From contig OZ320323.1 of assembly GCA_976226885.1 (NCBI GenBank), forward strand, positions 44,392,001 through 44,456,000: a stretch of 64,000 nucleotides of DNA. The letters are read 5' to 3'. Both the position numbers and the translations under genes were made by a program. Positions 2,451-64,000 of the stretch are shown here, piece after piece (positions within the stretch are counted from its first letter, which is position 1; each line of letters starts with the position of its first letter). The notes beneath the pieces were generated by a model, which ran no database searches, had not been told where the DNA came from, and was given only the letters and a program-made list of their open reading frames with translations. This DNA is from Iphione sp. A-MEVVRFRX5 (Eukaryota).

Positions 2451-5400
2451 ATCCAGGGCAGCGCTCCTCACTGGATATTATCCCTACAGACTTGGCATGC
2501 AGGTAAGTGCAGTGATTATTCCACTTCTGCCTACATATTGTGATGATTAACCACAATTTGTATGTGAATACCATCCACATATATAGGGGAACACGCAACT
2601 CAAAGTAGCGATGAAAATCGTATACCGTAGTTTTGTTCACCGTTTTTCAGGGTACCCACCGACTGATTGTGAGATATAGAGGAGAATTAAATTATGTACT
2701 AAATGTAGACTAAATATAACAAGCTGGTTGTTTACTATATCTATATCCATTATATAAAAATATGTATTTGTGTCCTTGAGTGCATCTGTTTTATTGAGGA
2801 TTTTAGAAGAGGGCAACATGATATACGCTCTTGTGAATAGCAAATGACATCTACATTTACTCTGTAGATAAGCAAACTACATTTTAACATTTTAAGTAAA
2901 ATTTGACGCTTAAAACTGACAAGCGTCTATTGCTATGGTTCGTTTTCCGCATTTCTGATATCGTTGTTAGACATATCTGTTTTTCTTTGTTACATCCGGT
3001 TATTCCCAATTATTGAAGATCTGGATCAGTATGTCCGTATTAAAATTTAATTCAGAAATACAATGAACATGTAATACTTTTGATTGGCAGCATGGTGCGA
3101 TTCGCCATGGTAAACCACACGGTCTCCCGGAGAGATATAGCCTGTTGCCGAAGCTGCTACGGAAGGAGGGCTACCAAACACACATGGTCGGCAAGTAAGC
3201 GATAACAGCATGTGTAGAACTAGAGAGAATTGAGAATTACATGTGCAGAACCAGTTCAGTTAATAATACCGTCTCTGTCTAACTCTATCAGTGGATCCCA
3301 TACTTCTTCTACCTACATGTATATCAATCTGTCTGCACATCTCTCTGTGTATGTGTGTCTGCCTGCCCGCCTGTTCGCCTGTCCGTCTCTCTCCTGTACC
3401 CTCCTCTCTGTCTCTATCCCTTACCCACATTTCTATTTATCTTTGGGTTGTTCCTTCCTTTCAGTATTGTCCTCATTTCTTTTGTCTCTGTCCAGCTGTC
3501 CGCCTGTTTGTCTGTCTATCTGTTGACCTGTCTGTCTGTTTCTCTGTCTATCTGTTGACATGTCTCTCTCTGTTGCTCTTTCTAGTTGTATTTCTCCTTC
3601 TCTTTCTGTCTGTCACTATAGTACACACTTCTATTTTTATTTCTGCCCGCCTTTTGTCATTCAATGCCGGTTTCTCCCAAGGAAGCCTTCTGTCGGGATA
3701 CACAGATCGTCCGCGGCTGGGGGAGGTTATTTTTTTCTTTTTACGATATTTTTACGGACCCTTTAACAAGAGATGACAGATTTGGTTCAAGTCCATTCTC
3801 TTAGAGAAACCCAATACACGAGAACAATATTGTTATTCCATTTCCGACAGGTTTCCAATGGAAATCCGCCGACACAACTCCACTTTGCCCAGAGGCCGCA
3901 CGTTTAATGTATATTAGTTGAAAGGTTCTTATCTAGATATCGTCCTGCCACATCCTCATGTAACATGACCGTGGTCTGCATGCGTGTAGAGTTAAAAAAT
4001 CTCTGTGGTAGTGTTACGTCGGTGTGCTCTTTTCATCAACAATATACGCATTATTGTGGCGAAGTTTGTCCGCTTCCATCATGATGTGGGATACAATCAC
4101 AACTGACTCCATCACCAACATACACCATCACCAAATTACCTTATCACCAACATACACCATCACTGACTCATACCATCACCAACATGCCCTAACACAAACT
4201 TGCACCATGACCATTTCACTCTCTCACCGACTCATACTATTACAACATGCAGGCCCGTAGCCAAGGGGGTATCGGGGGTATTGCCTGATACCCCCCGACA
4301 GAAGCCAAGAGCTCCACTTATCTAATGTATATATAATATATACATGCAGAGATCCACCCCTGTGGTATTGGGGTATGGTCCGATACTTCCCACAAAACCT
4401 CCTGGCTATGGGCCTGCAACGTGTACTATCACCTACTCACACCATCACCAACATGCATCATAGCCAACTCACACCATCACCAACATGTACCATCACCAAC
4501 TCACACCATCACCAACATGTACTGTCACCAACATACACCATAACCAAATCATACCATCAACAACATGCAATAACACAAGCAATGGTGTGAGTATGAGATG
4601 CAGTAATGGTGTCCCGGTCCCCACACTCCTGTATGAAAGGGAGGACATACACTCGTTCTACAGCATCAAAACTACACCCTTTTCACTGACTTTTAGCTGA
4701 AAAAAGACCTGTTTTTTAAAGGAAACACTGCTTTTTGAGTAACTAAAACACCCCCTTTTTAGAAAATGCTGACTTTTAAAGAAATAATAGTTGTGAACAC
4801 TATCACTACATTTTCGCGTGCTGCATGTCTTTTACAGGGCTCCCTTCTCTCTTCCTCATTCCTTTCTTCTTTTGAGCTCCCTCTCTGTCTCTCCCTCCCC
4901 TCTGCCCTCCTCTCATCCTCCCTCTCATCTTCTCTCCACCTCTTTTCCTCCCTTCTCCTCTTTCTCTCTCCCTCTCCCTTTACCTCTCTCATTCTCTCTC
5001 TTCCTCTCTCTTATCTCTCCCTCCCTCTCTGTCACTCGCTGTCTCTTTACCTCTCATCCTTCTCTATCCCTATCACTCCTTTCTTGCACTGTCTCCCTCT
5101 CATCCTGCCTCTCTTCCTCTCTCCACCTCCCTTTCTCCTTCTCTTTCCCTCCCCTCTCTCTTTTCTAAATGTATTCCTCAGGCAGAGAGGAAGAGAGAGA
5201 GAGGGGAGGAAGAGATAAAGAAAGAGGGAGAGAGAGAGCAGGGAAACAGAGAGGGACAGAGAGAGAGAGCAGGGAGCAAGAGGGAGAGAGGGAGGAGGGG
5301 AAAAATTGAGGGAGGGAAATAGAGAGGGAGAGAGAGGGAGGGAAAAAGAGGGGATAGGAGAGGAGAACAGAGAGGAAAGGGGGATGGGAGAGGGAAAAAG

Positions 5401-33743: not shown

Positions 33744-34056
33744 NNNNNNNNNNNNNNNNNNNNNNNNNNNNNNNNNNNNNNNNNNNNNNNNNNNNNNNNN
33801 NNNNNNNNNNNNNNNNNNNNNNNNNNNNNNNNNNNNNNNNNNNNNNNNNNNNNNNNNNNNNNNNNNNNNNNNNNNNNNNNNNNNNNNNNNNNNNNNNNNN
33901 NNNNNNNNNNNNNNNNNNNNNNNNNNNNNNNNNNNNNNNNNNNNNNNNNNNNNNNNNNNNNNNNNNNNNNNNNNNNNNNNNNNNNNNNNNNNNNNNNNNN
34001 NNNNNNNNNNNNNNNNNNNNNNNNNNNNNNNNNNNNNNNNNNNNNNNNNNNNNNNN
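33744..34056. other. Assembly gap
   Basis: Run of N. Confidence 0.99.
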
Positions 34057-48624: not shown

Positions 48625-51600
48625 TCAGTCTTTTGGCAACTGTCTGATCAGCAGGAAGGAACCCACGATGCCGCAGATCTGTCGAGATACAAATAATAAT
48701 AACAATAGTGAGATTGTACATTTGAAACCACGATTCACAGCTGTGTAGTAGTGCATTAATAAACAACTCGTTAAACTCATAATTGCAACTTGTGTTTTCC
48801 TAGTAAATCTTTCGGAATCGTGTGAGATCCACGAGGACTTGACTTACCAAGAATATAAGAATGGTAATTCCGAAGCCGAGGATCAGGGAGGAATTCTCTA
48901 CCACATAGCGTTTACCAGCGTCATAACATCCCTGGAAAACACAGAGAGTAGTAAAGTAACGTGTTTTACAAGACGCAAACGACTAGCAGTAGAAAATATG
49001 CATCCATCAACCAGTGTTTATACTCAGGGTGAGACTCAGGGCGAGATCCAATCAAGTACAGTGTCGACAGTAAATATACCAGCTATACAGCACGTGTGCA
49101 TGTTTAGACGAAACGTTAGATGGAGATCAGACCAGAATCGGATCAGAAAGTTCCTGCTCATTACCGACATGACTACACTGTACCCTCGTGCACACACACA
49201 CACATTCCCACACGCACACACTGACACACACACACACACTTACATCGTAGTAGAGCGCCCTGTTGATGGCGCCGTCCGGCTGCGCGGGGGGTCCCAGGCG
49301 CCACTTGGTGCACACGTGGCGGTTCACGTAGCGGTAGAAGTTGTCGTGGACGCAGCAGGAGCGGGGCACGAAGGGTTTCTGGTCCTCTGGGGGGGGGGGG
49401 GGGTAGACGTAATGATAGAAACACGTCAAACAGGACGAGGACGAAGCTACAGAGCCTATTCTCCTGATGTTAATGAAATTACTGTCTTAGAGACGGAATA
49501 TGGAATAGGTGACTTGCACACATGGCCGATGTTACAGAATGATCTACATTATATATTTTTTGCGCCGTTATTACTGATATTAATATTCGTCCATGATGCT
49601 TCTCCCAGGGTTGTCATCTCCGTGTCACAAATAAAGGTAAAATTTATAAAATCACATTGTTGGTAAATTCATCTAGAGGTAGAACTACTTACAGTAGTAA
49701 GACAAGAAACTCGAGTTATCAACTGTTAGGCCTGTTACAAGCTCTTTGTTAGTAGTCTGATTAGACATCTACATCTACTCATGCACTTTCTACCAGTAAA
49801 CAATGAAAAGAAACAGCATCAACAGAACCCCATCAAAACAAAGGATGCCATAAGAAATCAAATTTACCAAATTCACTGAAACAAATTACCAAAATGAATT
49901 AGTGAGTTCAAACTTACAGTCTAGCATTAGTGCAACTATTGTTTCGGGGCACTACTATCTTATGAGGCTGTATTTTCTGTGAACTGGGCACCCATTGTGT
50001 GCTCGTACATGCTACTTTGTCCCCCAAAATAATAGTTCTCAAATGGGTTACATAACCGCCAGTAGTAAGAACAGCACAGCAATCACCACAAACCATGTGC
50101 TCGTGTTAGAGAAGCTATAGAACACAGAGGAACATGCATCCTGGTCATACCCGAGCCTTGGATTGTTCCATCTATGCCGTCCACTGCACCAAACTGTTTG
50201 AACCACTTGGTCTCTCGATAAAGAGCCCAACCTGTAGCGTCGACTGCACAGCAGAAGAGCTGAAAACGTGGTCAAAGTGGAAATTAGTGATTAGAATTTT
50301 CCTCCTGCCAGAGCTTTGGATTGTTCCATCTATGCCATCCACTGCATCAAACTGTTTGAACCACTTGGTCTCCCGATAAAGAGCCCAACCTCTAGGGTCG
50401 ACTGCACAGCAGAATAGCTGAAAACGTTTTCAAAGTGGAAATTAGCAATTAGCACTTTTCACCTGCCAGAGCCTTGGATTGTTTCATCTATACCTTCCAC
50501 CGTTCCAAACTGAACCACTTTGACTCCCGACAGACCTCCCAAGCATTAGGTTGGATTGCACAGCTCAGCACAGCTGAAAATGAGAAAGGGGGATGCTAGC
50601 AATTCAACTGGTGGCCTTAAATCCCCATGTTTCAGCCTAGAGAACCTGAGAAAATAAAATGAAATAAAAGTTAGCTGCATGGCTAGTTGACTTGAAAGGT
50701 CTTGACCCTCATCACAACTGAGCATGCACTGTCGTATTCTTGTCTCTTAAGTAACAGCTGAAATAAAGGCTATTTTCAAGGAACAAAATTACATTACGTG
50801 TATATAAATACCCCTCTCTATTACGACCACTCCTTATCAGGACCATTTGAGGTCAGAGCCAACAGTAACCATGTTATGGGATGTGAGAGAGGACCATGCT
50901 ATCAGGTAAAGTATCAAGAGTTCGCAGAGCAAGTGCTGTTCTCCAAGCAATGCCCGCTGTTTTCTGAAACTCGATCAAAGTCTGCGAGGAAACTAGACAC
51001 ATCGATGATAAATGTTTTCTTGGAGTGGGAACGAGGGTAGTAGCAATTTCTACGGGTGACCCTAACCTACATAAAGGACAGGGTGCCTCGTATGGAGGTG
51101 AAAGGAAGTAGTGAACTAGTATTCAGGTGTTATAAATTATCTTTGTGGAAAATATTACCATACATATGGCTTTCTTTATATTTAGTGTGCATGTCAATAC
51201 TATGACCACAGTATGTAGCATGCCTTTGAAATAATACATGAATGTGTGCTTTTTGCTAAATCAAAGATTTCTAAAGACCAGTTTGGTTTATAAGTTGATA
51301 CAAAATTTATTCACTGAAGTCAGCTTTGACAACCCTTGTTTTCACCTCCAACTTACCAAAAGTACAGCAGATCCTGTATTAAAGACCACCTTTCTTCAGG
51401 AAATCCCTCTTTTAAAGACTGCATTTCTTTCATAACAAAATGTTATGAGACCCAATCTCAAAAGAGCCTCCTATAAAGACCATTTCTGATAAGGAATGTG
51501 GTAGTCTTTGTAGAGAGGTTCTACCGTACCAAGATTTCCCACTCAAAAAGAATCTTGTTTCTTAAGGAGTTTGATTTTCACATCACACAAGTATCTTATC

Positions 51601-54600
51601 ATAGTACTACAAACACTAGGTATGTACACCAACCTTATCTAGTGGGACACCTTATCACTAGGTCACAGGCCTCAACACTGAACTACAGAGACGTGTACAC
51701 AGATGTCCTCAACTTACTAGGAAGTAGAACTTATCTTGTCCATCAGGAGGGCTTCAGTGTGAAATGAAAAGAAATAGTGAAGAAGAAGCACTTGTCTTCT
51801 TCCAGTAAGTCTCCTAGCTCAGTGGTGTGGAGGCCATCACAACAAGGACTTGATCAAACCGGGTGGACATGTCCACCACTGGATGAGTTCCTCTACTTGT
51901 TGACCTTAGAACTAACACTTACTGCGCATACATCAGGAAAGGTAGAAGTTACAAGAGACATGGGTAGGCAATCACCAAGCTCTACCTTGTGGTAATTCTT
52001 GATGGTGAGAACACCAGCAGGACTGATGGGGGGGGGGTGGTTTTGGCAGGGCGTGGGTCTTGCTGGAGACCTACCAGGATTCCACGGTTGGCGGTTAAAC
52101 CACCTGGCCTCTCGGTACGCGAGCCAACCCCGGTTCTCCACCGCGCAGCACTTCAACTACAACCCTCAACAAGAGTTAGAGCTCGGCCATCTCCGGCACA
52201 GACACACAACTCTACACACAAGACGTGAAACTCCTTACGAGTGACTGTAGTATACCATGAGAACAGTTCCGAAACTATATGTGCACTTCAGACAAGTCAG
52301 TACATGTGCTTTGATGATCTGTTTATCTGGGCAAAGTCGGATAGCATCGATTATATTTATGATGGAGTACACCTCCCAGATCAGGTAGCAGGAGACATAT
52401 TATACAAGATGGCGCCTTACATTAAAAACAATTACAGATACATTACTTTATCAAGCCGTGTTTTAAGAAGATAATCCACTCATTTGTAAAGAGTGTATCT
52501 GAGAGAACCTCCGATCCTGCATTAATTGTACACTATTATGATCAAACTCTGCTATCTGCTAAACTCACCTCCTCTTGTGCCTTGTCCCAGGCATATGTAA
52601 CAGCTCGGTTGAAATGCTCGAACTGGTCAACACCGTAGTTCTCTTTAAGCGTCTTCTTCATAGTGTCACGTACGGCATCCCCAAGCTGTGCAGTAAAGGA
52701 ACATGAGGTGAACTTTCTCAATAGACTAGTGGTGGAGTGAAGCAGGACAGGATGGGCTTTCTATAGTGGCCATCAGTGGAGTAGAGAACAGGATGGTCGT
52801 TCTCTATAGGTCAGTGGGTGGAGTAAAGGATGACAAGATGGACTTTCCCAATAGGTTTGTACATTAACCAGCGTGACAGCATGGTAATTGATTTTCATCC
52901 GGTCCCAATTCGTATTACTGCTTCCTTACTGTCCCCCAAAAGCACCGGCACTCATTTATCAATGAGGGACGGGCAGATATGAAATGATGGTAAATACACG
53001 GCTAACCTCCTACACAATGTAAGAATAAAACAGCAATTAACAAGAGCTGGGAAAAAGAATAGTAACATAAATTATCTTTCTCTCTCACCGAAAACTAATA
53101 AAAGACACATGCACTGAAACTTCACTAGTCTGGTCGGAATGGTTGCACCTGCTTGAGCTGGAATTCTGACGTGGCTGGATTTGTAGGGGGTAACTAAGGT
53201 AGATACATAACTAAACTAATACTCTCGGGAGAGCTGATCTGACATCTTGAAAGTTTACTGTATAAGCCAAATATGAAAACCATGCAAGGTAATATGGAAG
53301 ATACAGGGATTTTCTCGCCAAAAAAACCCCTTTATAATGAAGGTGGCACCCTATTGAGATTTACTAAAGAGATTTTGATAATCTTTCTAAAATATGAATT
53401 AACTAAAAAAAAAACTGATTATAGTGCAAGCATATAGTAAGGTGCACGTAATATTTATGAAATATATAGCCCAAAACCAATGGATTCATGCTAGAATGGT
53501 GTACCTCTGGCAACGAAGTTTCCCTCCATGAAGTATTATTGAACACATCTACTTCCTAAACAGAGGCATACCTGTACTCTCGTAGATGGACAAGTGTGCA
53601 TATTCTGTACATGTTTCATCGGGATTTATCCAGTCTGACTCGGGTGATATTTTCATAACAGTTCTGGCTGGCAGAGCCAAGACCCCTACACCACATGGCT
53701 TTAGCCACAAGTTGTACCAACAAGGGTATACGTAACAGCAGTACATTTTGTTGACAGAAATATTCATGTCACTGAACAGGATAAAAGCATTGACACATTC
53801 TGACTTGGAGAGTACATGTACATTTGGAAATTAGCCGCTACTATGAATGTAATGAATGCATAAGTACTATGTATTTATCAATACATGTATATATACATAT
53901 ATATACATTGAATCCTGAAGCTAGAAACTTGCCTGGACCGTTTAGTCTTGGATTGTATTGTGCAACAAGAAAAGTATGCATATACATAATAAAATATATA
54001 GGATATGTCCCTTTCCAATATAACTGATTTAAAAAAAGAGAGGCAGACACCTTGAAAACGGTCAAGAGTGCGGTTCACATAGAAAGGGGTAAAGATACAT
54101 GGGCATGCAAGATCCCTCCTAGAAGAACTTATCCGAAGGTGTGCGGTTCAGGTTCATTACTTACCACGCCGTAAAACTATTAAAGATCACTCATAACATT
54201 ATCACATGAGAAGTTGACGGAGAAACGAGTTATATATCTGACAAATTCATCCTATGAAGTCGTCTAAAGTTGTGAAATCCACCAAAGAAGTAGATAGATA
54301 ATTGCTTCATCGCATCTAGAATTACTGGTAGAAATTGCGTTTCAGTTGAGAGTATTGGTGTGTATAGTAGACTTACTTGTGACCGGAACACGATGGCCAA
54401 GATAGCGGAGACCAAAAGGATAACGAAGATGAACACTAAACAGGCGAAATACTGGAAAAGAAAACGCCACGAGACTGTAAACTTGGTAGACCCCCCATCA
54501 AGGGTTGTGAGTATCCGTAAAAACTGTCGTAAAGAAAATTTTAAAGAGGAAGCTGGTCTTAACAGAGCCCTACATAATTATGAGAGTGATTGTATCAAAT

Positions 54601-57600
54601 AGGTGTGTTAAGAATCAGCGAATGGTTTAGATTGGACAACTAGCCGCAGATCGTGTACGTGTCATTATAAGGTCTTCTTTGCTGGGCCATGATCCGTGCT
54701 GTGTCTACTCTCAACACATTAATATAACAGCCAAAACATTGAGACCATGCAGCTTCGATCCATGCGAAACTAATTGACACTAAAATAGATCACAACACAA
54801 TATCACATACATGCTTGAGAAACAAAACGGAGGGAAAAAGAAACGTTGGTGTGTTCATATGTCCGAATTTCATACAAACACGCATGTCTAAACACATGTA
54901 GTTCAGGTAATGTTCATTGTACAATGTGAGAGTAACATTGGATAGAATAGCTTTACTGGTGACATTCAACAGAAAACTTGTATTAACTACTGTGAAAACA
55001 AGCATGTTGCTAAAGCAATGCCTGTGAAGTGAAACCCAGCCATACATCTCACTGAACTGATGTTCTAAAGGGACTGCAGTGACAATCCCAGTACAGACTC
55101 GAACAAAGCAGAAAAAATATGCATTATGGAGTTACAATAAGTACCTCCTTCCCCTGGCAGTTCTGTTTTTTACATTTGATATCCCTCCCTCTGTGTGAAA
55201 GAGAAGGGCATAGATCACTGAGGACAGGCAGCACTAGTTATGACCTTGGTTGGTGGTCTCACAGCACAAGTCATGCCCTTGGATGGTAGTGTCTCACAGT
55301 GCTAGTTATGACCTTGGATGATGGTGTCTCACAGTACTAGTTATGACCTTGGCTGGTGGAGCCTCAGAGCACTAGTTATGACCTTGGTGGTGTCTCACAG
55401 CATTATAGTGATATCCATGGATGGCAGTGTCCCACAGCACTAGTTACGACCTTGGATGGTAGTGTCTCACAACACAAGTTATGACCTTGGTTGGTGGTGA
55501 CTCACAATACTAGTTATGATCTTTTTTGGTGTTGCCTCACAGCATTAGTTATGACCATGGATGGTGGTGTCTAAGAGCACTAGTTATGCCCTTGGTTGTG
55601 CTTCACAACACTATAGTTATGACCTTGGTTGGTGGTGCGTCACCGCACTAGTTATGATCTTGGTTGGTAGTTCCTTGCAGCACTAGTTATGACCTTGGTT
55701 GGTGGTGCCTCACAGCACTCATTATGACCATGGATGGTGGTGTTTCACAGCACTAGTTATGACCTTGGATGCTGGTGCCTCGCAGCACTAGTTATGGTCT
55801 TGGCTAGTGGTGCCTCACATCGCTAGTTATGTTCTGTCCCATTAACGAAATATCTCTACTTCTGAAACTAAATCAGTCATAAGTTTACCATACAAATGGA
55901 GATAATAAGAAATACACAGCCACATTTAGTATATTAAGTTGCCTTATCAGTAAAATATGACTAATGTAGCTGAAGCAGCTGCTCTCAGGGCAGGATTCCT
56001 ACTGTGTGGACATGGAACATGCCTTGCGTTGCATCCACCTTCTTCATACTGCATTTCCAATGTAATAATGAACGATGGAAAGCATCGCACTCAGATGATT
56101 ATAACATTGTTAAGAATATCATTGAGATGGCAAACTGTACACGAACTTTAAGCAATGATGAACGGCACAAGCCAGACCTTATTTACGATGTTGTAACAGA
56201 CTGTACACTACACAAGACACTGCACACAAAGCCATACAAGACTTCACTGTATTTAGCGCATATAAGCATAAAGTACATGTACCATATATGGGCCAAAAAT
56301 TGCTGAACTTGCTTTTCTCGCTCCCCACTTTATGGCCCAGTATGGCACACAGTGCATACAGTGTGGAAAGCCACCTTAGGGATGTATGTCCAATAGGGAT
56401 ATGTTTCAGACAGGTTGGGCACTGTTGTGAGGAATAGTGCCTATCTTCCATACATTATAAAAGTCTCCACAAGGGACATATCTCAACTAGGGACAGTTGT
56501 AGGCAGGACCAAGATTGTCCTTAACAGAGACTTTCCACTGTATTGCACAATAGGGACGAATGGGTCATGGTCTTTGGTCATAGTGAGAGCTAACCTAAAC
56601 AAGCTGCCATGTACAATTGGACGATAACAGCTAGATACTAAGGCTTAAGTAAAATATATCAGTTTCCAGTAACCTTACCGACCCCTGATTCTAGCTACAG
56701 ACACATGAAATGTACCATTTTGTCCCTAAAGTCATAAGCTTTCGTTTCATACAAGTTTCATTAAAATCTAAGCAGTAGAAGTGATATATATGCCATATAC
56801 ATCTGTGGCTTTCCGTATCTGTTAACATAGCAAAAAACAAAAAAGATAAAAAATACCAAAAAAAAAACAAAAAAGATAAAACAGAATACCACCTATCTAC
56901 CAACCCTGTTACTGGAAATACGGATATATTTTTACGGCTTTAATTCAGATCGATAAGCCAACATTAATATCACATATTTTACGGCAGACACTACCTAATT
57001 CAGCACAATTAACTCTGTTAATGGACATTTGACTTATACTAAATGGTCAGACAGCATTTGCATTATATGATGAGACATAATAGCTGTGTCATTCAATGGA
57101 ATAAAGTATACTAACAAGCATTTGGGAGGTACGCAAAGACTGTAAGAGAAAACCATATGAACATGTTTGAAAACAGCGTTTAGGAAGAAAGTATACAACG
57201 AATCCTAGCATCACTGCAAGGGGTAAAGGTAAGACAGAAAACTAAATAAAAGAAGTTTCTTGCTCTAAAGACTCACAACTGTTGTGAAGTTTTAACTCCA
57301 CCCCGAGCCTTCCTTGGGAGAATGAACATATACATGTACAAGATAATTGTTATATGCTCCTAAACTATACCAGAATTGATTAAAGCTACTCGGTTAAATC
57401 TATGGTAGCTGTCATATGCTGCTAGACGGTCACCGTCTTCACACACAGAGATACTCAATACTCACGATGGAGAGTAGGGTGCGATTGTCGTTAACGGCGC
57501 CACAGAAGCCGAAGAAGGAGATGATCATGATGAGACCCCCTGCAGCGATGAAGAGGTAGGCAGCCACCTCGATGATCGGCGAATTAGAGATGGTGGCGAT

Positions 57601-60600
57601 GAAGTTGCGGTCCACGGCCAGCCATATGCCCACACCCACGATAATACAACCGGCAAACTGACAAGGAAACGTATACCGTACATCGTAAGTGACATCAACA
57701 TCACAACACAGAAGGTTTTAAACTAGGAAGCTTATAATACAGCGTTAAGTTTTTAAAAAAAAGACTTTAAAATGCTTCGTCCGTGTGGCCTACAACACAC
57801 TCATGTCTGTCAAACTTTCCACGAACGGTAGGTGGAGCCTGATACATGACAACACCATAATGGCTATACATACACCTTTATTCATACATGAATAGACACA
57901 GAACTATTAAATATCTTCTACCTCCTTTCACCCATGCTACCCATTCCTTCCTTCCATGCACTAATCCTGTCACCCAAGCCTCCCCCCCTCCCCCCATCCT
58001 AGGCTCCCATATCCCCAACCCCTCTATCTTAAGTTAACCTCCCCTACCTTCATCCATCCACCCCCAACTCCCAAACCATCCTCAAATTATCAAGCTGTAG
58101 AACAAATCTACGTAAGCCCCCACCCACAAAAAAATAGGTGTGTTTCTGGTAACCCACCCCTACCTAGTAAAACCTCACCCTACCTAAGATTCCCTAGATA
58201 TGTGTTTTCATGGCATATGTTTTTGGAAAATTCAGTAGAAAAACAATAAAATCCATGGAAATTCACCCAAAAAACTGTAAAACTCATACAGATTAGTCAA
58301 AATTCTTGATATTGTCTTTATTATTATTGAAAACCAGAGGAAGAAAGTGGACAAAAATTAAAAAAAAAAGATTACCCCCCCCCCTCCTACCTAGGTTTTG
58401 GGCTGGTCGTGACCAGAAACACACCTATTTTTTTTGGGCCTAAGTATTCTCACCCAGGCCCTCAATCCATTCATTCCAACATCTCCTCTCTTCACCAATA
58501 TACCCCAGACCAGACTCACCCACTCAAATATCCTAGTAGCTATGTAGCTAACCATCCAAACTAATATCTGCCATATCCATCTACCTGTCCTCTCCTACCC
58601 CCAAACTCTCCTGATCTTACCTCCTGCTATCCCATCCTCCCTTACCTCCACCCTCTGACATATCCACCCTAACCTCATCCCTTCACCCCATCTTCCCATA
58701 TCTCCACACACTGCCATTTTCATCTCACGTAGACAGACCCCTATTTATGTACACTGACATATCCATCCAAATCTTACATCCCACCATCACATCCTCCTTT
58801 ACCTCCACACAGAGATATCCATTCTAACTTTACTTCCATCTGTCTAACTTCCCTTACCTCCACACTCTGGCATATCAATCATAATCTGGTCTCCCTCTAT
58901 CCCATCCTCTCCTACCTTCACACACTGAGACTATCATTCTAACTTTACCTCCATCTGTCTAACCTCCCTTACCTCCAGACTCTGACATATCTGTTCAAAT
59001 CTTACCTCCCGCTATTCCGTCCTCTCATACCTCCACAAACTAAGATATTCATAAGAAAATCATAACTCTGTTCTACTTTATCCTACATGAACACCTGCCG
59101 TAGTATGTGTACACTTACGAATATGATCAGGTTGAAGATAAACATGCAGTATTTAAGGCACTGAATCCGAGACTCCTGTCTGCCGCCCGGCTTCTTGAAC
59201 TGCTGCATGGCTGACGAGCGCTGCATAGGTTCCTATGGAAACAGAAAGAGTAGCTCAGCTGAGTCAATGTACTACAGCATTGGTGATGCGAACAGAGTGC
59301 ATTGAAAGTAGTAGCACGGATTAAGAAACACTGAAGAGCGATTATACCGACATATTATACGTGTTGTGGAATAGATAGGTTCCGGCCAACAGGAAATGCG
59401 GTTGTATTTAAAGTCGAGTGGGCTTGTTTGTACAGTCACCGCTCTCCTTACAAAGTAGAGGTATGCATAAATGTACATGTATATTTTGCATTACATGTAC
59501 CGTGTATATGTATATATAGATAGATACATTACATGTACATGTATATGTAAATCTATAGGGTAGAAACCCCCAATTGATAGAAATTAAGCTGGGGACCACC
59601 TGAGACCCTGGAAAACTTGGGTCCTTTCCTCGAGCTGCTCTCCTGAAGTTACAGGGACGCTTCTTGCGGGGAGTCACCTGGTGTACAGCAGTAGAACTAA
59701 AGTGCATGTTCGTTGCTTTAAGATCTCTCTAGTCATTGTCAGTTGGTGTGTTTCTTCTTTACAAGAAAGAGGCATAAAGAATACATTGACACGTACCTAC
59801 CCTCATATTACCCCTACTTCATTAAAAGGAGTTTATTTATCGGGACCAGGTCGACACGGCCCCAGGTTCTAATAACAGGGTCACTAACGGACATGTTCTA
59901 TGCATTAATCCTAGTAGTCGAGATCGCCCATAATTTTTGTTTACAGAATGGCATTTGTAGGACATAACAGCAGAGAAGATGTGCAAGCAATGCTTGGATA
60001 CGGTCGACTGTAGTATAATTTCAAATGCCAGAACACATGAAATATACACTTGGAGGGGGAATGTTTTATTAGTTCGGAACAGTTATTTTAGGGAAGTTTA
60101 ATGATACCTAGCAAACTATCTTACTCTCATTCACCTTGTAAAAGATCTGACATGAATAAGTCACAAACCAGTATGAAATTTCTTTGACAGGATCTGTCTA
60201 ATATTTCTTAAGCTGTGCGTCCTCAGAAATGCACTGCTGGTATTAGTCAACAGTGAGACATCGACCATGGGACATATCGACCCAATGTGCCAGGATACAG
60301 GCATAAAAGTCAATTCTCCTTGAGTATCGCACTTTCCACATTATCTATAAACACAACCTATCTTTGCAGGCTACAGATGGAACTGAGACACCTATTCCCA
60401 GAGCTTACTGTATTTGGGAATTCCCATCACTCCATATACATGCAACACCTGTATTGAACATGTAAACTAGGTCAGAGTTTCTCCCCCACAGATCGAGCCC
60501 AAACTGGCGACTTTTCTGGAGATCCTCCAGCAGGGCAAAAGGGGTGGACCTACCGACACTGGAAAAGGCTCCGTCTCATAATAATCAAAGCTCGAGGACT

Positions 60601-61731: not shown

Positions 61732-61933
61732 NNNNNNNNNNNNNNNNNNNNNNNNNNNNNNNNNNNNNNNNNNNNNNNNNNNNNNNNNNNNNNNNNNNNN
61801 NNNNNNNNNNNNNNNNNNNNNNNNNNNNNNNNNNNNNNNNNNNNNNNNNNNNNNNNNNNNNNNNNNNNNNNNNNNNNNNNNNNNNNNNNNNNNNNNNNNN
61901 NNNNNNNNNNNNNNNNNNNNNNNNNNNNNNNNN
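61732..61933. other. Assembly gap
   Basis: Run of N. Confidence 0.99.
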
Positions 61934-62462
61934 TAGAAAGGGGGTTGAAAGCATGAAAGAGGAAAAAGATTGTAGGGCAGGGCCAGGGGCTGAAGAGGCC
62001 AGGGGCTGAAGAGGATTTACCCTCGTGTTGTCCGTGTAACAAGGATAGTAAAAGAAAAAACTTCTGCAATAGACTGAGGTTTGGAGTAGACCATTGCTCT
62101 TTATTCAATGCTTATGTAGTTTTTATAACCTTTATGTCATAGAATGTCCATGAACCCTCCATGCCTGAACTCGGAGAGAGCTCTGACCTCGTTCAAAGAT
62201 GTGCTCTGGGACGAAGGTCATGAGTTACTCACATTTCCTACTACCTTTATCTTAATGATATCCTGTCGTCGCAACAAACCATTTCAGTGTAATAATTAAA
62301 ATAACAATAATATTTTATTTCCAAGTAATCGCCCTGAATAGGGCGATTTTTCCCACTTTGAAAAATTGGAATATTTTAGTCCATATTGAAACAACAAGCA
62401 GTATTGCATAATTGATAGGCCTCTTTAGATCAATGACATAACGTAGTAACTAATTACATATG

Positions 62463-63618: not shown

Positions 63619-64000
63619 TTTTATAACCTTTATGTCATAGAATGTCCATGAACCCTCCATGCCTGAACTCGGAGAGAGCTCTGACCTCGTTCAAAGATGT
63701 GCTCTGGGACGAAGGTCATGAGTTACTCACATTTCCTACTACCTTTATCTTAATGATATCCTGTCGTCGCAACAAACCATTTCAGTGTAATAATTAAAAT
63801 AACAATAATATTTTATTTCCAAGTAATCGCCCTGAATAGGGCGATTTTTCCCACTTTGAAAAATTGGAATATTTTAGTCCATATTGAAACAACAAGCAGT
63901 ATTGCATAATTGATAGGCCTCTTTAGATCAATGACATAACGTAGTAACTAATTACATATGCAGGCCCATAGCCAGGAAGTTTTGTGGGGGGTATCGGACG
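63619..64000 (+). repeat. Apparently exact duplicate of 62121-62502 (offset 1498 bp), running off the window end
   Basis: Identical by eye over 382 bp. Confidence 0.9.

Follow-up and report, generated by a model that had tools for sequence, protein, structure and literature searches.

A tetraspanin gene of Iphione sp. with two probable mutually exclusive exons for the CC-motif segment of its large extracellular loop

We analyzed a window of 64,000 nucleotides from Iphione sp. A-MEVVRFRX5 (assembly GCA_976226885.1, contig OZ320323.1, positions 44,392,001 to 44,456,000), and positions given without an accession or contig count from its first letter. The minus strand of this window carries a tetraspanin gene of 8 exons (59226..48625), whose splice borders and translations were read from the window. 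The intron between exons 4 and 6 (52685-52569 and 49386-49244) holds four homologous copies of an exon with the CC motif of the large extracellular loop, termed A, B1, B2, and B3. We believe, with a probability of roughly 0.85, that A and B1 are two old alternative CC-motif exons of one gene that are used in a mutually exclusive manner. Such a cassette had been proposed in a first-pass annotation made from the letters alone, and it is now supported by conserved exon classes in orthologs, by an equal exon order in Capitella teleta, and by mRNAs of another species that carry the two versions one at a time.

A and B1 each have an open frame that runs from phase 0 to phase 1, have AG/GT borders, and lie within the same intron, which is the arrangement of a mutually exclusive pair. 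The coordinates, phases, lengths, and borders that the first-pass annotation had given for the exons were all reproduced, as was its finding that A and B1 are open and homologous. The two exons have 12 of 23 aligned residues in common but agree at only 8 of 23 third codon positions. This likeness is not due to chance, because A and B1 each match a separate class that is conserved in other species.

To collect orthologs, exon 6 was searched against 1.84 billion representative proteins, and the full-length matches were then used for three homolog searches. These returned about 50 orthologs whose identity to the window protein is 50 to 56%. Most come from contigs of 1 to 2 kb with an uninterrupted coding sequence and are therefore mRNA derived; the named ones are all from annelids (Capitella teleta, Ridgeia piscesae, and Lamellibrachia satsuma). 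In these orthologs, two sharply distinct classes can be recognized for the segment that lies between the conserved ...AWDKAQERL and EDQKPYVPQSCC. The A class comprises 9 distinct cassettes (including that of the Capitella genome), all of 27 amino acids and ending in QVW[N/T]P or NPWTP, with the consensus L.CC.V....W..Y..S.W...Q.W.P. The B class comprises 65 distinct cassettes of 33 to 37 amino acids with WFxxFGA and an acidic tail. By comparison with these classes, A and B1 of the window are clear members of the A and B classes, respectively. Of the 11 positions with at least 80% conservation in the A class, exon A agrees at 10, while about two thirds of the residues of B1 match the B exons of siboglinids, as judged by eye.

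One species provided both versions as transcripts. Within a single 90% cluster, three A proteins (P0043, P0098, and P0099) and one B protein (P0097) are 100% identical outside the cassette. At the nucleotide level, the A contig (L030) and the B contigs (L028 and L029), which came from three different Joint Genome Institute (JGI) samples, align over about 1.5 kb including both untranslated regions and differ by three single-nucleotide polymorphisms and by an 82-nucleotide versus a 109-nucleotide cassette. Exactly one cassette was thus seen in each of these mature transcripts, and the two lengths are those of A and B1 in the window. A second A/B pair was found among near relatives (P0135 and P0137). 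When the cassette was removed and a maximum-likelihood tree built from the remaining protein sequence, A-bearing proteins stood beside B-bearing ones at no fewer than five separate places. The A label needs at least five changes on this tree and is clustered no more than are shuffled labels, and the backbones closest to A proteins are those of B proteins, at 85% and 93% identity. From these comparisons of sequence, the A/B pattern is that of alternative isoforms of one orthologous gene and not of two old paralogs.

We then read the orthologous genomic locus of Capitella teleta (GCA_000328365.1, KB305005.1). An intact A-type exon with AG/GT borders lies at 3904-3985; it reads LECCAVETNGWDVYQESKWIEDQVWNP and has the same 82 nucleotides in length as exon A and the A cassette of the JGI mRNA. 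This exon is unannotated and falls in an intron of the tetraspanin CAPTEDRAFT_21307, between exon 4 and the annotated 100-nucleotide B exon (4250-4349). The order of A followed by B and the phases are common to this locus and the window, so the pair that the first-pass annotation wished to see checked at orthologous loci is present in Capitella. The deposited gene model of this species accordingly lacks the A isoform and describes B only.

For both exon classes, comparisons among the window, Capitella, the JGI species, and siboglinids gave saturated synonymous divergence (dS) and a nonsynonymous divergence (dN) of 0.13 to 0.39. A neutral copy would be unrecognizable over a span that saturates dS, and thus selection has acted on both exons in this lineage, at least up to very recent times. 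This comparison across genomes had also been called for in the first-pass annotation, and it indicates that the two exon types are of ancient origin and that purifying selection has maintained them across species. Since A and B have been kept throughout the separation of these annelid lineages, a time sufficient for synonymous sites to become saturated, we argue that each version has its own function.

The reading frame offers a possible basis for exclusivity. Each cassette exon has a length of 1 modulo 3 (82 or 109 nucleotides), and either one alone restores the frame into exon 6. Inclusion of A and B1 together (191 nucleotides), of B2 and B1, or of no cassette leads to premature stops 76 to 437 nucleotides before the last exon junction, with loss of the fourth transmembrane segment (TM4). 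These stops confirm the frame shift predicted earlier for joint inclusion or skipping of A and B1, and mRNAs with a wrong combination would likely be subject to nonsense-mediated decay. Steric exclusion had been offered as a second means of enforcement. The 1,815-nucleotide intron between A and B1 rules this out for the pair, and steric exclusion is possible only inside the B array, with its 49-nucleotide spacers. Frame incompatibility is the only feature enforcing exclusivity that we could show for A versus B1.

In our proposed model, the gene belongs to an annelid-type tetraspanin subfamily, and the cassette exon encodes the CC motif together with the beginning of the variable head of the large extracellular loop. 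Splicing in A or B1 singly would give a full-length tetraspanin of 284 or 293 amino acids, respectively. The two products would have in common the membrane core, the conserved loop helices, and the six cysteines; the variable subdomain would present a different surface in each. With both exons or neither, the frame would shift, the protein would be truncated before TM4, and the mRNA would probably be exposed to nonsense-mediated decay. In this genome, exon B has also been triplicated in tandem, in 158-bp units; B3 is dead, and B2, although open and with a good acceptor, no longer has a usable donor.

Positions of the tetraspanin exons, the alternative exons, and the tandem B array in the window
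Feature	Position	Strand	Description
Coding exon 1	59119..59226	-	ATG at 59226, or in frame at 59208; N terminus and start of TM1; GT donor at 59118
Exon 2	57466..57657	-	End of TM1, small extracellular loop, TM2; AG/GT borders; Pfam PF00335
Exon 3	54377..54451	-	TM3
Exon 4	52569..52685	-	117 nt, phase 0 to 0, AG/GT; conserved large-loop helices, end ...AWDKAQEE; aligns to orthologs
Exon 5 (cassette)	A (52156-52075) or B1 (50259-50151)	-	
Exon A	52075..52156	-	82 nt, 27 aa, ends QPWNP; short CC-motif version; AG acceptor, GTAGGT donor; reads LKCCAVENRGWLAYREARWFNRQPWNP
Tandem array	50151..50622	-	Three 158-bp units: B3, B2, B1
B3	50467..50573	-	Decayed B copy, 107 nt, with indels and in-frame stops
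B2	50309..50417	-	Open B copy, intact acceptor, GC donor (GCAGGA), 49 nt from B1 acceptor
Exon B1	50151..50259	-	109 nt, 36 aa, WFKQFGA... tail; long CC-motif version; AG acceptor, GTATGA donor; reads LFCCAVDATGWALYRETKWFKQFGAVDGIDGTIQGS
Exon 6	49244..49386	-	143 nt, phase 1 to 0, AG/GT; PRSCC motif and next Cys
Exon 7	48848..48931	-	GC motif, last large-loop helix, start of TM4
Exon 8	48625..48678	-	End of TM4, short tail, TGA stop

Membership of the gene in the tetraspanin family is supported by several features. Exon 2 alone matches the Pfam PF00335 Tetraspanin profile with 40.7 bits (cutoff, 32.1), and full-length orthologs score 143 to 153 bits. The window protein can be aligned to orthologs over its whole length, and the best database match of exon 6 is 77% identical. 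The large loop has six cysteines in all, in CCA, PRSCC, one further position in exon 6, and the GC motif of exon 7. All six are invariant across an alignment of 43 sequences, in which the CC motif is CCA or CCG.

For a structural view of the two versions, AlphaFold2 models were made of the orthologs P0043 (A) and P0097 (B), which stood in for the spliced window protein. The models are confident, with a predicted local distance difference test score (pLDDT) of 83, and have four long helices with a loop domain. The best Foldseek matches of the ortholog model were uroplakin Ia/Ib, CD53, Tspan15, PRPH2/ROM1, CD9, and CD81, with E values from 8e-9 to 2e-4. The cassette directly follows the second conserved loop helix and supplies the CC pair and the short helices after it; the B version has two more short helical turns. 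Known partners of tetraspanins include CD19 for CD81 and ADAM10 for Tspan15. In tetraspanins that have been studied, the variable subdomain of the large loop carries partner specificity (PMC6773723). The A and B isoforms would therefore be expected to bind different partners, and two loop heads on one unchanged scaffold would offer a natural experiment on tetraspanin partner specificity.

The B copies form a tandem array that is peculiar to this genome among those we read. Tandem Repeats Finder reported a period of 158 bp with 2.3 copies and 88% matches at 50153-50512, which confirms the triplication described in the first-pass annotation. The GC donor of B2, the 49-nucleotide spacer, and the disruption of B3 by stops were also reproduced. 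Each unit consists of the last 49 nucleotides of the intron (two CTAAT branch-site-like motifs, a pyrimidine tract, and AG) and the exon. An ungapped alignment of the B2 and B1 units shows 90% identity; their exons differ at 8 of 109 nucleotides, with four synonymous and four nonsynonymous changes. B3 is about 72% identical to both. A DNA search of the 1.18-Gb genome found the 158-bp repeat region at this locus only, so it is not a dispersed repeat. The loci of Capitella, Ridgeia, and Lamellibrachia have one B exon each and no extra B copies, such that B2 and B3 occur only in the window among the four genomic loci. The idea of ongoing exon birth and death, raised in the first-pass annotation, fits B2 and B3. 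As young copies, they give a snapshot of how members of exon arrays are gained and lost.

With its indels and stops, B3 is dead. The status of B2 is less simple. The first-pass annotation had allowed for two or three tetraspanins from this gene; two is the number favored here, and a third is unsupported. Such a third isoform would use the GC donor of B2 and would carry a loop variant with four residues unlike those of B1. We consider this improbable. In its favor, GC-AG introns do exist, the frame of B2 is open, B2 equals B1 in the quality of its acceptor and branch-site-like motifs, and four of the eight changes that set it apart from B1 are synonymous. However, working GC donors are usually near perfect at the remaining positions, and the B2 donor (CTG|GCAGGA) agrees with the U1 consensus at only five of nine. 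No usable GT donor was found in the 49-nucleotide spacer that follows B2, read-through into B1 meets a stop, and four synonymous against four nonsynonymous changes do not show constraint. Thus, B2 is probably not a productive exon, although its acceptor could possibly act as a decoy. A broader reading is that the B array is a cluster of alternative exons caught while growing, with B2 either still spliced, yielding a third loop variant by way of the GC donor, or contributing an acceptor that tunes the A:B ratio as a decoy. We regard this as unlikely, but if true, the array would represent an early stage of Dscam-like diversification of the tetraspanin recognition surface.

Several observations weigh against the mutually exclusive use of A and B1. 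No sequencing run is listed for the species of the window, so that the use of both exons there rests on conservation. The search of representatives and the three homolog searches gave no protein from this species or a close relative, and the best full-length match was about 55% identical. The pyrimidine tract of exon A is weak, and the exon departs from the A-class consensus at one conserved position (Ser17 to Ala). In the siboglinids Ridgeia piscesae (L031) and Lamellibrachia satsuma (L032), B remains a separate exon and the phase-1 intron is retained, but no A-type exon was detectable between exon 4 and exon B. With regard to mechanism, a search of the intron for competing RNA pairing of the docking/selector type found only three inverted repeats, all short and weak and none convincing, and we rejected RNA pairing as evidence for exclusivity. 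The functional difference between the isoforms is itself a prediction.

An alternative is that only one exon is functional in this species and that the remaining one, either A or the entire B array, is a recent relic whose decay still lies ahead. The lack of a listed RNA run, the two departures of exon A, and the decay seen in B3 and B2 all favor this view. So do the siboglinids, whose B-only loci suggest a lineage-specific loss of the A exon and hence that A can be lost from the pair. On the other hand, A and B1 retain open frames, AG/GT borders, the ancestral lengths of 82 and 109 nucleotides, and nearly all class-conserved residues despite saturated synonymous sites. A loss, if there was one, could thus only be very recent, and we consider this alternative to have a low probability. 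We infer from the conservation of both exons that A and B1 are both used in the species of the window.

The last alternative, that the A-type and B-type proteins of other species are products of two paralogous genes and that the second copy in the window is an accident of local duplication, is prompted by database proteins that stem mostly from unnamed transcript contigs and by a JGI pair known from transcripts alone, but it is made extremely improbable by A and B mRNAs of one species that match throughout outside the cassette save for the three polymorphisms, by both exons lying in one gene in equal order and phase in two independent genomes (window and Capitella), and by a backbone tree that does not separate A from B.

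We next consider where the two exons of the mutually exclusive pair came from. Four other tetraspanin genes of the same genome were located at G000:C26:44461453-44461674 (about 5.5 kb past the high end of the window), C26:44488562-44488771, C10:51214289-51214507, and C19:497805-498014; two of these are thus nearby on the same chromosome. In all four, a single exon encodes both the CC part and the PxSCC part, and the phase-1 intron is lacking. An origin of A or B from one of these paralogs was rejected, as in the common part their similarity to A is about as great as that to B. Past the WF/WY, the paralog sequence (QQPG...) is A-like, and on that basis A is probably ancestral and B derived. In tetraspanin genes, introns have been reported to cluster in the region encoding the variable domain (PMC2650405). 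The phase-0 intron that immediately precedes the CC motif may be equivalent to one of the ancestral phase-0 tetraspanin introns of that study, while the phase-1 intron after the cassette, absent from the four paralogs, belongs to its "derived" class. This extra phase-1 intron makes the cassette a separate exon that can be duplicated.

Mutually exclusive exons that arose by tandem exon duplication are well known from insect Dscam1, myosin heavy chain, 14-3-3 zeta, and ion-channel pairs of vertebrates. Like these, the tetraspanin exons are adjacent and homologous, lie in one intron, have equal phase and similar length, and are each in frame alone. They also form an old, conserved pair with one exon per transcript in a relative, and joint inclusion or skipping breaks the frame. 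In contrast to the Dscam1-type pairs, docking/selector pairing was not found, the array also has the very young decaying copies B2 and B3, and the host family is new for the mechanism.

In human and mouse "non-conventional tetraspanins," splicing can change the variable part of the large loop (PMC6773723). Those isoforms are deletions and truncations only, with lost transmembrane helices, shortened loops, or new termini, whereas here the four spans are kept and the variable segment is exchanged; the term "mutually exclusive" is absent from that article. No description of mutually exclusive exons in a tetraspanin came up in full-text literature searches, in agreement with the first-pass annotation, which likewise knew of none. 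Taken together, the mechanism is well known and the tetraspanin example is new, and with it, tetraspanins join the gene families diversified by mutually exclusive splicing.

Some minor features of the window were also noted. An Rfam scan of 48 to 60 kb gave no match. The pyrimidine tract of the exon 6 acceptor consists of 15 uninterrupted C (G on the plus strand) at 49389-49403, and a (GT)n/(CA)n microsatellite directly follows the exon 6 donor at 49191-49239. Three overlapping open frames of 42 to 44 amino acids each on the minus strand are found at 62250-62449 and again at 63748-63947, 1,498 bp apart, which points to a direct repeat; an N run at 61732-61933 adjoins it. A further N run of 313 bases at 33744-34056 is either an assembly gap or a masked stretch.

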